Shown piece after piece: positions 4,840 through 27,900 of a stretch of 64,000 bases of DNA. Numbering within the stretch: the first letter of the stretch is position 1; every line of letters starts with the position of its first letter. Below the pieces are notes generated by a model. That model was not told the origin of the DNA. It ran no database searches and saw only the letters and a list, made by a program, of their open reading frames with translations. The position numbers and the translations under genes were made by a program. Origin of the DNA: Pocillopora damicornis (lineage: Eukaryota); NCBI RefSeq assembly GCF_003704095.1, contig NW_020844892.1, positions 186,001 through 250,000 on the forward strand, in the 5' to 3' direction.

Positions 4840-22365
<17,526 letters not shown>

Positions 22366-23595
22366 GTACTAATTTAAACGATTCGGTTGTGAAATCTGAC
22401 CACTGTCTCTTTCGTAATGCACGTGACCTAACCAGGCCAACCAGGGTATGCTCGTTCTTCTAACCATTATCACGCGGAAAAAGTTAAAAAAATGAATCAT
22501 AAGCAGTTACTTATTGACGAACGTCAAGAGTGGCTTCTCTTTTGAAATGGCGGTTATGCTCGACAAGGCTTCTTGAGCCTGCGTTCTTCTGGCCATTATC
22601 ACAGGAAAAAAGAGAAAAAATTCATGATAAATTTAAAAAGAGATATTAAAATAAAATAAACAAGGAAATAAATGAATGAATATTCACTAAAGGCTTACCA
22701 TAGGCGAGTGGAATGAAAGGAGATGGAGAGGACAACGCGCTTCGTAAAGAGACCAAGTAAAGGCTTGTTCTTGAGTATAGCTTCTGAGCGCAACTGATAA
22801 CTTTATAGAAATAAGATGGTGGACTGTCAGAGGAACTTCAAATCCCTTAAGAACTGTTACAAAAACAAGGTGAATAAAGACCATGTGTAGCTTCATTACC
22901 CAAAAAGTGTTTTTGAGATGAAAATAACCATCTGAAATGTTTTTCACATACACCTAAGGCTCTTCAAACAAAGGACTTACTGAAAATTATTGCATCCTCC
23001 TATCTATCAAAAAAATTTAGGCTGTACATCTAAACACCATGTCGACCACCATGTTTGATCCTATATGGGCTAATATCTCCACGATACACTACGAGGTAAC
23101 TACGAGGACTACGAGGTACCCCTTAGGTTGCTCTGAGATTTGTCTGGTCTGACGGTCTGGGTCCCCCTTAAGCCAGCAAGAAAGACCGCTGCCAAATTGT
23201 GACGTAGTAGTAAGGAGCAAACTAAGCTTGTCGTACAAGGCTGAAGCCGCCCCATAGGGTCTTCTACGATTACGGTTGGCTTCAAAGTATTGGGATCGCC
23301 AACTGATCGAATACGGCTTTTAAACGGTGGAGGATCAGAAAGGCGTGAAACTTCTAAGCAGCTGAGACCTAAGTGCGGAGATGAACTACAAGTCGAGTGC
23401 CAGAGTGGATTATTTTCTTTTCGCAACGTTCTTCTTGGCTTCGTTATATTCTAAATGTGTGTAACTTCGTTCAACATTCGAAATTAAGTCCTCTCGCGGC
23501 TGAACCGGTGAACCTTGCTTTAGAGCAACAAGAGGAAGAAAGAGGTATAGTAAGAATCAAGAGAAAACTCGAGAATTTGGTGAAAGGCATTTCCA
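22366..23595. promoter_or_regulatory. Putative bidirectional promoter and 5'UTR region between ALLC and the SH2-C1-ART gene
   Basis: The two start codons are divergent and 1.23 kb apart. CpG is visibly richer than in flanking introns. A triple ctacgagg repeat lies at ~23089-23118. Confidence 0.5.
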
Positions 23596-24990
23596 ATGTC
23601 AAACAAACCACCTCAAGACCACAAACCTTCTGATGGGGCTCCTGCTTATGTCGACATCGAGAAACTGAAGGAACCAGAGTGCAGAGCATGGCAAAGTGAT
23701 ATGCTGCTCGCTTTGCAGCAGAATGCTGCCCCTGAGCCAATTCGCTTAGCTTGTATGAAGAACCTGCCTTCCAGACCATCGTTCTTTCAAGAAGAGTTTC
23801 ATGGCCGCATTCCTCGGGAGGAAGTCGACGAACTACTCTCTGGTCCTAATGGTCCAGTCAACGGAAGATACTTAGTGAGAGAGAGTAATAGCTCACCCGG
23901 CGACTACAGCCTGTCCTTAAGTTACGGTGGACATATTCTTCATTATAGACTATTCTACGAAAACGAAAGATTTTTCATCGATTCTACTGATGAGAAGAAA
24001 TACAAGTCGATCACAGATCTTGTTGTTGATGTGCTCAATATGTTTCGCGTGATTGATGATGTGGATGGACATGTGCCAAAAGAAGAAAAGAAAAAACCCA
24101 TCGCTTGCCCTCACGTATTCAAACCTTACTCTTACAAACATTTTAAATGGTGCGCATCTTGTGGAGGTTTTATGTGGGGAATTAAAGATCAAGGTATGAA
24201 GTGCGAGGGATGTGGCCTGGATGTTCACAGCCGTCCGCGTTGTATGAAGAATGTTGAAGGAGAGTGCCCACTTACTTTACCTTGTAAAGAAAAGAAAGTT
24301 CCACGTAACAAATTAAGTGCCTCAAGTTTTCCACCCAAGCAGAGTACTGTGTCTGTTGACACATTCAAAGCTAGTTGTGAATATCAAGAGAGCTGTATTA
24401 GATTCCTCAGTTATTTGAACATTCCTTCATGTTATTTTGAAGCAGATGCATTAAATCCCTGTTATTGTGAAGAGTGCTGTCTTGATGTTGAAACACCATT
24501 GTGTAAGAGTGGTAACCCTCCCCAAACATACTCGCTGCCTACAGGATGGTGTCGCTTTCAACTTGGGGCTGCTAGTGGGCAGGAAAATATTGTTTCATCA
24601 AACTGGAATTTGGCATTTATGTCTTTAAACCCAAAGGAGGTTGTCAAAGTACTTGAGTCAAATACCACAGATAATCATTCAGAAGACCTGAGTGAGGATG
24701 GGTCTAAGCCATTGATAAAGATGACACCTTCTATTATATGTGCTGATTTGGATGCACCAAAATTAAAGTACAATGACACTGAGACTGGCGAAGTCAAGGC
24801 AGGCCAAGTTGTCTTGCAAGCTTACATTGAACCATACTCGTACCAAATGATGCGGAGACCAGGAATGAATGATGAAATTGATCCATATTTTAAAATGGAC
24901 ACTATATATTGGGTGACAAGGCAAGCTTCATCCATTTTACCATTTGCACTGCTTGTAAAGACCATGGATGCAACCTACTTGAATCTATGA
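23596..24990 (+). CDS. 464-aa protein from an intronless CDS: chimaerin-like N-terminus, SH2, C1, and NEURL4-like ADP-ribosyltransferase-fold C-terminal domain (probably inactive)
   Basis: WQSDMLLALQQNAAP..C...RP.FF.EEFHGRIPREE matches the alpha2/beta2-chimaerin N-terminus. SH2 with YLVRES spans aa 68-146. C1 HVF..C..CGGFMWG...QG.KC..CGL.VH....C...C spans aa 173-224. aa 260-456 (CEYQ..C.RF..L.IP..YF, CYCEEC, GNPP..Y.LP.GWCRF.L, TPSI, QVVLQ.YI.P.SY, DPYF..IYWVT, ALLVK) resembles the NEURL4 C-terminus as recalled. Confidence 0.9.
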   Translation: MSNKPPQDHKPSDGAPAYVDIEKLKEPECRAWQSDMLLALQQNAAPEPIRLACMKNLPSRPSFFQEEFHGRIPREEVDELLSGPNGPVNGRYLVRESNSSPGDYSLSLSYGGHILHYRLFYENERFFIDSTDEKKYKSITDLVVDVLNMFRVIDDVDGHVPKEEKKKPIACPHVFKPYSYKHFKWCASCGGFMWGIKDQGMKCEGCGLDVHSRPRCMKNVEGECPLTLPCKEKKVPRNKLSASSFPPKQSTVSVDTFKASCEYQESCIRFLSYLNIPSCYFEADALNPCYCEECCLDVETPLCKSGNPPQTYSLPTGWCRFQLGAASGQENIVSSNWNLAFMSLNPKEVVKVLESNTTDNHSEDLSEDGSKPLIKMTPSIICADLDAPKLKYNDTETGEVKAGQVVLQAYIEPYSYQMMRRPGMNDEIDPYFKMDTIYWVTRQASSILPFALLVKTMDATYLNL

Positions 24991-27900
24991 ATGCAAGTAG
25001 TTTATCTTTTTTTTTCCAGGATGTGCTCACTGCTATACGATATACAATTTCCCCGATAACTGAATAGCCAAAAATGAGTTGTCTAAGTGATGCTCAATCA
25101 CTGGATGCAGCTTTATAATTACAATGTTAGCTCATTTGTTGTAAGGATGCAACAAGCAAGAGCATCTCTTGAGTAATCTTCTTATGTACTGTGCATCTAA
25201 ATTATCAGCCAACTACAACTGATTCAAAGCAAAAGACCTTCAGTTCTACTGGAAGATTGTCAAACTTTGTCAAGGTAATGCAGTCATACAATTTAAGTGA
25301 CATGCAGTCATTCAACAGCCTAATATATCCTGGGCTTTAATTCTGTTTCATCAATGGAACCCTTATGTGATGCACCCCACAGTGAGAAAAAATGTTATAC
25401 AGAGAATGTGTTCCACCTAGGGAAGGTCGGTTATGTTTTAAAAAGAACATACATTTAAAAAAGCCAAGCACAGTGAACAATTAAATTAAACATTGGTATC
25501 ACCATCTCGATTCTGATTGGCTTTGAGCATGAAGTTGACTTTGCTTTAAATTTTGTTTTAAATAACAAATACAGTCCATAAGCCCAAATTTAATTTTACG
25601 AAAGAGTTTTGAGGTTGTCAAAATTAATATTTTCACTCAGTGCGTGTTACATCTAACATTCTGGCTCATTAGGTTAATTCTTTCACTGCCAAAATGAACA
25701 TGCTACTTTGGGTGATCATAAAATTATTTGCCATCTTTTTGTGAGGATGAGAAGTTAAATCAAGGCAATTTCTGAATTATTTTAATATTCTTCATTTTTC
25801 TCACTTGGTTGCAAAAATTGTAAGGCAAATGTATCAAATGATCATCCTTGGGAGTGAAACGGACTTCCATTTTGCTATATGCCATTCTATGGCACTGAAT
25901 GTTGAGTGATGCAGTAAATTACAATTCAATCCCAAGGTAAGATAAAGAGTGTTAAAAATTATCATTTCATCTGGACAGAAAGACCAGGTGTGTCCTCACT
26001 TTATTTTATAATCAGTTCGATCAAACCATACTTGTTTGAAGTAGCCACTCAGTGGTTAAACTCAGTTAATTCAGAGCAATGGGGGTGATGAGTTTAATTG
26101 TCTGAGTTGAGAGAGGAGTTGCTGTGAACTGTGTGTTATGTACTAAAATACTATAATTAACATAATGTAGCTAAACTGGAACAAGTCGTCCAGGAGAATA
26201 TCCAGATCATTAACATGGTAGATATTTACTCCTCACATCCAGTGTCATGTTGTCAATTGATTTGAATAATCGCATTAATTCGATATAATGGCTATTTCAC
26301 CTTCCTTAAGTTTCGTGGTGACCCTACCTTATTATGGAACTGTCTACTGCATTAATGGCTACTTAATTATTATACTTTTACATACTTGCAAATGAGCACA
26401 TTTTGAACAGGTCAGTTACCTTGATGTAAATGTGTACAGAATAGAAGCTAAGGTCCGCCCATTTGTGTGTATAAAAGGGTTTGATGTACTCATAGGGAGA
26501 TCTTGATCAAGCAAAGTAGAGGAGAACGTAAAGAGTGGAAAGTAGTAAGAGCCACATCCTCATATAAGATGTATTCTTTACAAATTAATTAACTGTAGAA
26601 AATAATCAGATGGTTAGTAATTTCCTTTTTTCTTCTTTAGTGGCAGCACACACTGGGAGAGAGGCACTAACTTTGTATCAGTCTCAAGATCCCAGATTTA
26701 AGCAGGGTACCTATGTTAAAGATAGGACACACTAGAGCATTTAAAATACAGATGTTTGATTCTCTAGCATGGATGAACTACATTTTGCTTAAGGCACATT
26801 ATCAATTATCACACATCAAATTCTATAAAAAAAGCCTGATCATTTTAACAGTGGTCATGTGAATGAGAGATTTTTATGATTTCAATTTTTAAGGGAATGC
26901 CATGATTTTATCTGGTAATAGGCATTTTTATTATTTTTTTAAGAAATAAATGTGCATAAGCATCAACTTTTAAGGCCTCAAGTGCATCTTTTCATGCACA
27001 AGAAACTTTTCTCAGTTCTTGTGATTTAAAAGGAAGCAAATGTTTGCAGAATGGTTCAAAAAATAAATTCCAATTGTTATGGTAGAAATTTCACTGAAAA
27101 AATTATTCTCACTCTTTTGACAAAAAGCCATATTTGAAAGAAATCTCAAACAATTGGAACATGAAAAAGTTATAATTATTCTTATACAAATATATTAGTA
27201 AAGAAATATAATAAATAAACAGATGATTACATAACCTACCAAAAATAGGAAACCAATGTCAGTAAAGAAAAGCTGATATACTCTCTTGACAGTACATAAT
27301 GGATCTTAGTGTAAAGTGGGGGACAAAGTGTTGGAAACAGGCTCCTGAATTTAGAATTTGTTCATAAATCCATACTTAAAAGTCTGATCAATGAGGTCTA
27401 TCAGTTATGTCATGGTGTCTTTTGGCTATTGAAATTTGTACAGAAAATCTACCCATGAGTGTTTAATTTTATCTCCAAAGACTTTGTCTTTAACAAGCGA
27501 CCATCATTGTGTGACTAAAAGAGAGGTAATTGCTTGCAATAAATTATTTGCATGCAAGAGTAACATTTGGAAAGGTGGGGCAGGACACTGACACCTCTTT
27601 GGTGCAGATCTACCCCATCGGAGTTATGGTATGTGTATTTGTAGGAGAGAGGTGGAGGGGGATTTAGGAGTCTTTTTTCCTCTCTTCCCACCCAGCCTAC
27701 TGTCCTCTCTGAGATATTCCTTTCTCTTCTCAACTTTCTAAATAAAATGACACAATGGAATACTTATGGCTCATTGACAAAAAATATCCTTGTACAGCAA
27801 ACTGAATGCAAACTCAATCAAGATCCTGAGCCCTGATGCGACATGCTGCTTAGCCAGCCATATCTTTACTTCTTTAGGGTTTGGAAGCAACTCCTGTCAA

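Follow-up and report, generated by a model that had tools for sequence, protein, structure and literature searches.

We analyzed a window of 64,000 nucleotides (nt), 379 of which are N, from the genome of the stony coral Pocillopora damicornis (contig NW_020844892.1, positions 186,001 to 250,000). On its plus strand, at 23596..24990, the window carries one intact open reading frame (ORF) of 464 amino acids (aa) that ends in a TGA stop and has no internal stop. Our analyses established that this gene is real and transcribed, and that it belongs to a cnidarian-wide family whose members combine an SH2 domain, a C1 domain and a domain with an ADP-ribosyltransferase (ART) fold. The gene probably represents a functional single-exon cnidarian signalling adaptor, recruited by phosphotyrosine and the membrane, in which a chimaerin-derived sensor is joined to a pseudo-ART domain that replaces the RacGAP of chimaerins. 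The domain is classed as a pseudo-ART on the evidence of its sequence, as it has lost its catalytic triad while it stays under purifying selection. An earlier note on this DNA, made from the letters alone, had described the ORF, its SH2 and C1 domains and a number of short motifs; all of these are present exactly as described, and most of the motifs are invariant across 31 aligned relatives.

Domain composition of the protein

The solved structures that the full protein matched best were those of beta2-chimaerin (E 2e-32) and alpha2-chimaerin (E 1e-30), the next match reaching 48 bits and any other solved protein an E value of 1e-11. The chimaerin alignments begin at aa 30-32 and therefore include the segment that precedes the SH2 domain, which bears out the proposal of the earlier note that the N-terminal module is chimaerin-like in its entirety. 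The alpha2/beta2-chimaerins (CHN1/CHN2; 3cxl, 1xa6) have the same order of N-segment, SH2 and C1, but carry a RhoGAP domain where the coral protein has its ART-fold domain, and their SH2-C1 linker is considerably longer (about 80 aa versus about 24 aa). The N-segment of the coral protein (aa 28-66; 23677..23793, on the plus strand like all parts of the gene given below) aligns to residues 22-58 of beta2-chimaerin, and its residues W32, L37, A39, L40, A44, P46-I49 and A52-M54 are invariant across Anthozoa. The SH2 domain (aa 68-143; 23797..24024; Pfam E 8.9e-15) retains the phosphotyrosine pocket, with Arg alphaA2 (R74), Arg betaB5 (R95) and His betaD4 (H116) kept in 38 of 38 sequences and Ser betaB7 (S97) in 37 of 38. 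Phosphotyrosine binding by the domain is well supported by this conservation. In the C1 domain (aa 173-226; 24112..24273; Pfam C1_1 E 9.7e-12), all eight zinc ligands are invariant in the 38 sequences tallied, as are W194, G195 and Q199 of the ligand loops, where the Trp-Gly and Gln-Gly pairs are kept, and it is likely from its sequence that the domain ancestrally bound diacylglycerol (DAG).

Pfam identified neither a RhoGAP domain (PF00620), whose absence the earlier note had reported, nor Neuralized repeats (PF07177) in the 464-aa protein, and it matched no domain in aa 227-464. That region consists of a poorly conserved, low-confidence linker (aa 227-258; 24274..24369; predicted local distance difference test, pLDDT, < 50) and the C-terminal domain. 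A word-indexed search with the N-terminal module returned only family members and one tick kinase, true chimaerins being out of its sensitivity, and a search of a protein atlas gave no usable match.

The C-terminal domain (aa 259-464; 24370..24987) is homologous to that of NEURL4. A HMMER scan of aa 240-464 against 1.84 billion representative proteins gave 190 significant matches, and true NEURL4 proteins matched the domain at E 1e-19 to 1e-12. By Pfam scans and source names, many of the matches are NEURL4 proteins with five or six Neuralized homology repeats (NHR) followed by the domain at the C-terminus, and in others the domain comes after LRR, ARM, ZZ or SPRY modules. Pairwise, a crinoid NEURL4 was 31% identical to the coral domain (E 2e-27). 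No Pfam model covers the NEURL4-type C-terminal domain. When it was modelled with AlphaFold2 from a diverse alignment, the pLDDT was 90 and the predicted template modelling score (pTM) 0.87. The top matches to this model by Foldseek in the PDB were exclusively ART domains of the PARP family (PARP4, E 4e-4, TM about 0.33-0.35), and the first 17 matches in an all-against-all structural comparison (VIA) were ART domains of the PARP type, including those of PARP16 (Z 9.2 over 149 residues), PARP4 (8.7) and PARP1 (8.5). The pseudo-PARPs PARP13, RCD1/SRO1 and TASOR were also among the structural matches (Z 6.1-7.3), followed by bacterial ART toxins. Homology to NEURL4 and the predicted structure therefore together support the NEURL4-like ART fold that had been proposed from the letters alone, that is, a domain of NEURL4 type with a predicted fold of the PARP/diphtheria-toxin type.

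De Souza and Aravind (2012) reportedly predicted an ART domain at the C-terminus of NEURL4. The NEURL4 C-terminus has been described as a PARP-like ART domain (PMC8932523, PMC7955679, PMC10450202), and Cardamone et al. (2022) found NEURL4 to be active and its activity to be abolished by mutations of the HGS and ELEW motifs (PMC8932523). The coral domain has the core motifs of the NEURL4 domain and the same cluster of cysteines ahead of the ART core, and differs from NEURL4 in that it is not preceded by NHR repeats. The cluster, CxxxxxC ... CxCxxC, is formed by C261, C267, C289, C291 and C294 (24376..24480; C295 is clade-specific). Its five positions are kept in 84, 69, 85, 83 and 84, respectively, of 85 homologues outside the clade of anthozoan SH2-C1 proteins, and this family-wide conservation makes it a putative zinc site. 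We found no published description of this cluster in the NEURL4-type domain.

The same C-terminal domain appears to be mobile, as it follows diverse targeting modules in LRRC9-like LRR, NHR+ARM, NHR+ZZ and hemichordate PARP14-like proteins. In most of these architectures the active site retains its His-Gly, Tyr and Glu motifs, and none of them has SH2-C1. The hemichordate protein, from Glandiceps talaboti (XP_077997139.1; P0074, 1963 aa), is an observation in its own right. It has RRM, KH, three Macro and WWE domains, and its NEURL4-type ART domain, at residues 1738-1962, occupies the usual place of the PARP catalytic domain, with HGT, Y and EMEW motifs intact and no PARP domain identified by Pfam. 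Judged by its domain order, this looks like the displacement of a catalytic domain between two ART families.

Substitutions in the former active site

The active-site motifs were compared in an alignment of 121 full-domain homologues and the Pocillopora protein, which together comprise 85 proteins without SH2-C1 and 37 anthozoan SH2-C1 members. The 85 proteins largely keep the motif His (71/85), Gly (76/85), Tyr (81/85) and Glu (78/85). All four are replaced in 37 of the 37 members of the anthozoan clade, His by Met, Leu, Tyr, Val, Cys or Phe, Gly by Ser, Tyr by Cys and Glu by Tyr, the last three replacements being invariant. Motif 1 of the coral protein (aa 337-344; 24604..24627), the counterpart of 'WHxAFHGT', has N338 for the first His, M342 for the motif His and S343 for Gly. 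Motif 2 (aa 375-386; 24718..24753), the counterpart of 'SPSIxY', has T377 for Ser and the invariant C382 for Tyr, and motif 3 (aa 436-441; 24901..24918), the counterpart of 'ExEW', has the invariant Y438 for the catalytic Glu. In pairwise alignments, relatives read 'AFHGT' or 'AFHTT' where this protein reads 'AFMSL', and 'EMEW' or 'EIQW' where it reads 'TIYW'. In addition, the clade lacks a loop of about 18 residues ('PGD...G...GH') that is present beside the site in intact relatives. In the model, motif 1 lies at the end of a strand before a helix, motif 2 at a strand-to-helix turn and motif 3 at the start of a strand, which we take to be the places of H, Y and E in PARP domains.

Neither the H-Y-E (or H-Y-x) triad by which the ARTD/PARP-like superfamily binds nicotinamide adenine dinucleotide (NAD+) nor the HG[ST] and ExEW motifs of NEURL4 are found in the coral protein, which has 'FMSL' and 'TIYW' in place of the latter two, and His or Glu is kept in 0 of the 37 clade members. 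Since the His, Gly, Tyr and Glu that have been lost are needed for NAD+ binding or activation, the ART-fold domain is predicted to be a catalytically dead pseudo-enzyme, and we infer from these replacements and the missing loop that it has no enzyme activity. The ART-fold output envisaged in the earlier note is thus not supported in an enzymatic sense. It is very improbable that the domain is still an ADP-ribosyltransferase that works through non-canonical catalytic residues. It does have the ART fold, and there is a precedent of 'inactive' ARTs that were re-evaluated (PMC9027952), but a replacement of all four residues in every clade member is difficult to reconcile with catalysis, the more so as mutations equivalent to those seen here abolish the activity of NEURL4 (PMC8932523). 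In a medusozoan sister clade, moreover, Phe-Ala stands in place of His-Gly, and Glu is replaced by His, Arg or Asn, with Tyr mostly kept. Because this clade is also without the motif His and Glu, which likewise argues against a surviving enzyme, the loss of these two residues was probably ancestral to cnidarians, with the other residues fixed later.

Five positions at which the anthozoan clade has become fixed for a difference from a strong consensus (N338, S343, T377, C382 and Y438) all lie within the three active-site motifs, and the fold core and the Cys cluster are common to the clade and the wider family. As the substitutes have been fixed through anthozoan history and the domain is under purifying selection, the pseudo-ART is therefore most likely a binding module, by analogy with PARP13/ZAP, TASOR and plant RCD1/SRO1. 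In these pseudo-PARPs, similarly, selection has preserved an ART fold whose H-Y-E triad is degenerate, as a module for interactions and not for catalysis. However, they are only distant structural relatives of the coral domain, their partners are zinc fingers, WWE, RST and the HUSH complex, and none is coupled to SH2 or C1.

The concentration of fixed changes raises the question of whether the former NAD+ pocket has been rebuilt, in Anthozoa, into a new conserved site for ligand binding or catalysis that is formed by the same five residues, which we consider unlikely. If true, such a pocket would be a cnidarian-specific sensor that connects a small molecule or protein modification to tyrosine-kinase and lipid signalling; to our knowledge, no pathway component of that kind has been described in any animal. 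It is quite unlikely that the pocket serves as a sensor or reader of a molecule or modification other than NAD+, such as ADP-ribose or a nucleotide-like ligand, which would be coupled to phosphotyrosine/DAG signalling. Such a role could account for the position of every fixed clade-specific change in the motifs of the pocket and for the persistence of these changes since the ancestor of Anthozoa, in a fold that is retained and modelled with high confidence. However, His and Tyr, the main contacts of NAD+/nicotinamide, are gone, the adjoining loop is deleted, and the medusozoan clade has fixed other residues (F, A, Y and H), which argues against one common ligand chemistry.

Distribution, selection and proposed function

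A search of 5.8 billion proteins identified 37 full-length relatives with 42-99% identity to the coral protein, all of equal length and all with SH2 and C1 domains. They are from stony corals (Stylophora, Montipora), sea anemones (Nematostella, with the orthologue LOC116619735, Exaiptasia and Actinostola) and octocorals (Dendronephthya, Xenia). The 99%-identical protein belongs to a cluster with entries from Pocillopora verrucosa, P. meandrina and Stylophora, each of them named "uncharacterized protein", and one Montipora protein (P0009) has no encoding contig on record. Hydra vulgaris LOC105843462 belongs to the more divergent sister clade, which comprises 14 medusozoan proteins of the same collinear layout. 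In total, > 50 cluster representatives, drawn from many species and assemblies, contain the collinear ORF. The earlier note had suggested a lineage-specific adaptor, a description that is too narrow for a fused gene whose full-length orthologues extend across Anthozoa and Medusozoa, including Hydra.

The anthozoan clade was monophyletic (Shimodaira-Hasegawa-like approximate likelihood ratio test, SH-aLRT, 99) in a quick maximum-likelihood tree computed from the ART-like domains, with a split between octocorals and hexacorals. Nearest to this clade was the medusozoan representative and then the crinoid NEURL4, NEURL4 being the nearest non-cnidarian neighbour. These relationships fit a single fusion before the cnidarian radiation, with vertical descent since. 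In the Pocillopora window, Nematostella, Dendronephthya and Hydra, one exon holds the whole coding sequence, whereas the canonical chimaerin of the same coral is multi-exon, and this difference suggests that retroposition may have been involved in the origin of the gene.

All domains of the protein are under purifying selection. Against a coral orthologue with 87% identity, the ratio of nonsynonymous to synonymous substitution rates (dN/dS, Nei-Gojobori) was 0.14 overall, with values of 0.085 for the N-segment, 0.045 for SH2, 0.048 for C1 and 0.14 for the C-terminal domain, and of 0.37-0.66 for the two linkers (0.37 for aa 227-258). As dS is saturated in more distant coral pairs, only the comparisons of the studied gene with P0002 and of P0002 with P0008 are confident. 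Among the allelic differences in RNA contigs, 6/9 are synonymous.

The complete ORF is carried without a joint by polyA RNA-seq assemblies of three studies, whose contigs extend from 23204-23278 to past 27000 and cross the junction of the C1 and ART-like domains (~24270-24370) unspliced. Two stretches upstream (21500-21867 and 22052-22235) have no RNA coverage, and a neighbouring gene on the minus strand has spliced joints in the same data, both of which serve as internal controls. The coverage of the studied gene therefore represents RNA and not contaminating DNA. It is a single-copy gene in the Pocillopora genome, of which 234 Mb in 4393 contigs were searched. The canonical chimaerin of the coral is encoded elsewhere (C2024:465506-476794, minus strand), where one exon for SH2 and one for C1 are followed in order by four for RhoGAP (L006, L009, L012), and RhoGAP exons were found only at that locus. 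The exon in which its SH2 domain starts shares 57% identity with the studied protein over aa 36-81 of the latter. Since the canonical chimaerin is present separately, the studied gene does not represent a mis-assembled chimaerin but a further gene derived from a paralogue. Its lack of introns, versus the many exons of the canonical gene, would speak for an artefact, be it a decaying retrocopy, an assembly chimera or a read-through gene model. Such an origin is effectively ruled out by the representation of the ORF in so many clusters, the RNA across the C1-ART junction, the low dN/dS and the excess of synonymous allelic differences.

We infer that the protein acts as an adaptor, and what its SH2 and C1 domains bind, from the features above. 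Signalling by a tyrosine kinase and a phospholipase would be the trigger: the SH2 domain would read phosphotyrosine and the C1 domain would bind membranes or DAG, the two together providing coincidence recruitment of the protein to phosphorylated, DAG-containing membrane sites, at which the pseudo-ART domain might recruit or sequester a partner. An unlikely alternative is that the protein has no partner of its own and is a regulated decoy or cap. The main action of the pseudo-ART would then be to fold over the N-segment, SH2 and C1, in the manner of the RacGAP in autoinhibited beta2-chimaerin, in whose structure (1xa6) the N-segment contacts the GAP domain, and the protein would compete with canonical chimaerin for phosphotyrosine and DAG sites, tuning Rac signalling. 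That the N-segment is nearly invariant though the GAP domain is gone, and that a canonical chimaerin coexists in the genome, would both be understandable on those terms. However, a cap would not need a pseudo-ART that is conserved to the same degree as the sensor domains, with clade-fixed residues in its former active site. The full-length AlphaFold2 model (pTM 0.46) likewise has no confident inter-domain packing and no reliable inter-domain geometry. A complex prediction for the N-terminal module (aa 28-230) and the pseudo-ART (aa 255-464) scored 0.11, below the mark of 0.34, and speaks neither for nor against such packing.

Several points weigh against the adaptor interpretation or parts of it. 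At position 11 of the C1 domain, where Pro is usual, the coral protein has Phe (F183; 24142-24144); Pro is kept in 25 of the 38 sequences and Phe is found in 13 stony-coral sequences, including this one. The importance of this proline is known from the C1B domain of PKC-delta. There is also an insertion of two residues ('RP'; 24232-24237) between the zinc ligands H211 and C216, common only to the Pocillopora protein, its 99% relative (P0001) and Stylophora (there 'RD'). These three proteins read HX4C at the HX2C expected from the zinc scaffold HX12CX2CXnCX2CX4HX2CX7C. The two changes may weaken DAG binding, which is uncertain in pocilloporid corals on this evidence, and the DAG part of the phosphotyrosine/DAG recruitment proposed in the earlier note is less secure in this coral. 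Other points concern the C-terminal domain. A profile of the domain by itself (A3) matched no PDB sequence, including those of PARPs, at E values up to 10; a second profile (A2) was swamped by its SH2/C1 columns in the PDB search. The mapping of the triad is based on the family sequence alignment and on secondary-structure position, not on residue-level superposition, and the middle triad residue of human NEURL4 has been tabulated differently, as H-L-E (PMC7955679). Furthermore, PARP9 was once called an inactive ART and was later found to be active in complexes (PMC9027952), and the enzymology of NEURL4 itself rests on one study.

The protein combines known domains in a new way and adds a new pseudo-ART. 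Our literature search, whose reach did not include the 2012 work of de Souza and Aravind, found no paper on the SH2-C1-ART architecture, in agreement with the earlier note, and the architecture is new to both phosphotyrosine/DAG signalling and the ART superfamily, two well-studied toolkits. Its relatives are named "uncharacterized", "N-chimaerin" or "Protein kinase C" in databases. The latter two names are wrong and give coral transcriptome studies no basis for assuming Rac-GAP or kinase activity. The family also provides a clean natural case in which an enzyme fold has apparently become a non-catalytic module and was then frozen by selection since before the divergence of anthozoans and medusozoans. 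As the gene is single-copy, intronless and present in tractable models (Nematostella, Hydra), its function is directly testable, and it could reveal what the poorly understood NEURL4-type domain binds.

Transcript, related loci and neighbouring gene

The single coding exon (23596..24990) is preceded by a 5' untranslated region (UTR) at 23204..23595, with RNA contigs that start at 23204, 23241 and 23278 and no joint ahead of the ATG. The region downstream of the coding exon (24991..27000) is transcribed and probably belongs to a long 3' UTR, and no ORF of at least 90 aa occurs between the stop codon and about 28.7 kb. The RNA contigs are unstranded. One of them implies a transcript that extends to about 28.6 kb, and a single run has a GT..AG joint from 25272 to 26639, the shorter side of which is only 28 nt. 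The downstream transcription may represent either a non-coding transcript that overlaps the gene or a long 3' UTR, perhaps with alternative splicing.

Two further loci were noted in the search of the Pocillopora genome. The second-best match to the N-terminal module (L004, contig C1902) proved to be an unrelated tandem-SH2 gene and was rejected as a paralogue. The only other fragment of a NEURL4-type domain detected (L002, C590:97386-97601) reads 'WHVAFYGT', with Tyr for the motif His, and is split by introns or stops. It may belong to a coral LRRC9- or NEURL4-like gene.

The minus-strand neighbour, which stands head-to-head with the studied gene, is divided by CT..AC joints into exons at about 22286-22459, 22699-22853 and 22981-23171. 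About 30-100 bp separate the end of its first exon from the transcript start of the studied gene, an arrangement that suggests a common bidirectional promoter.

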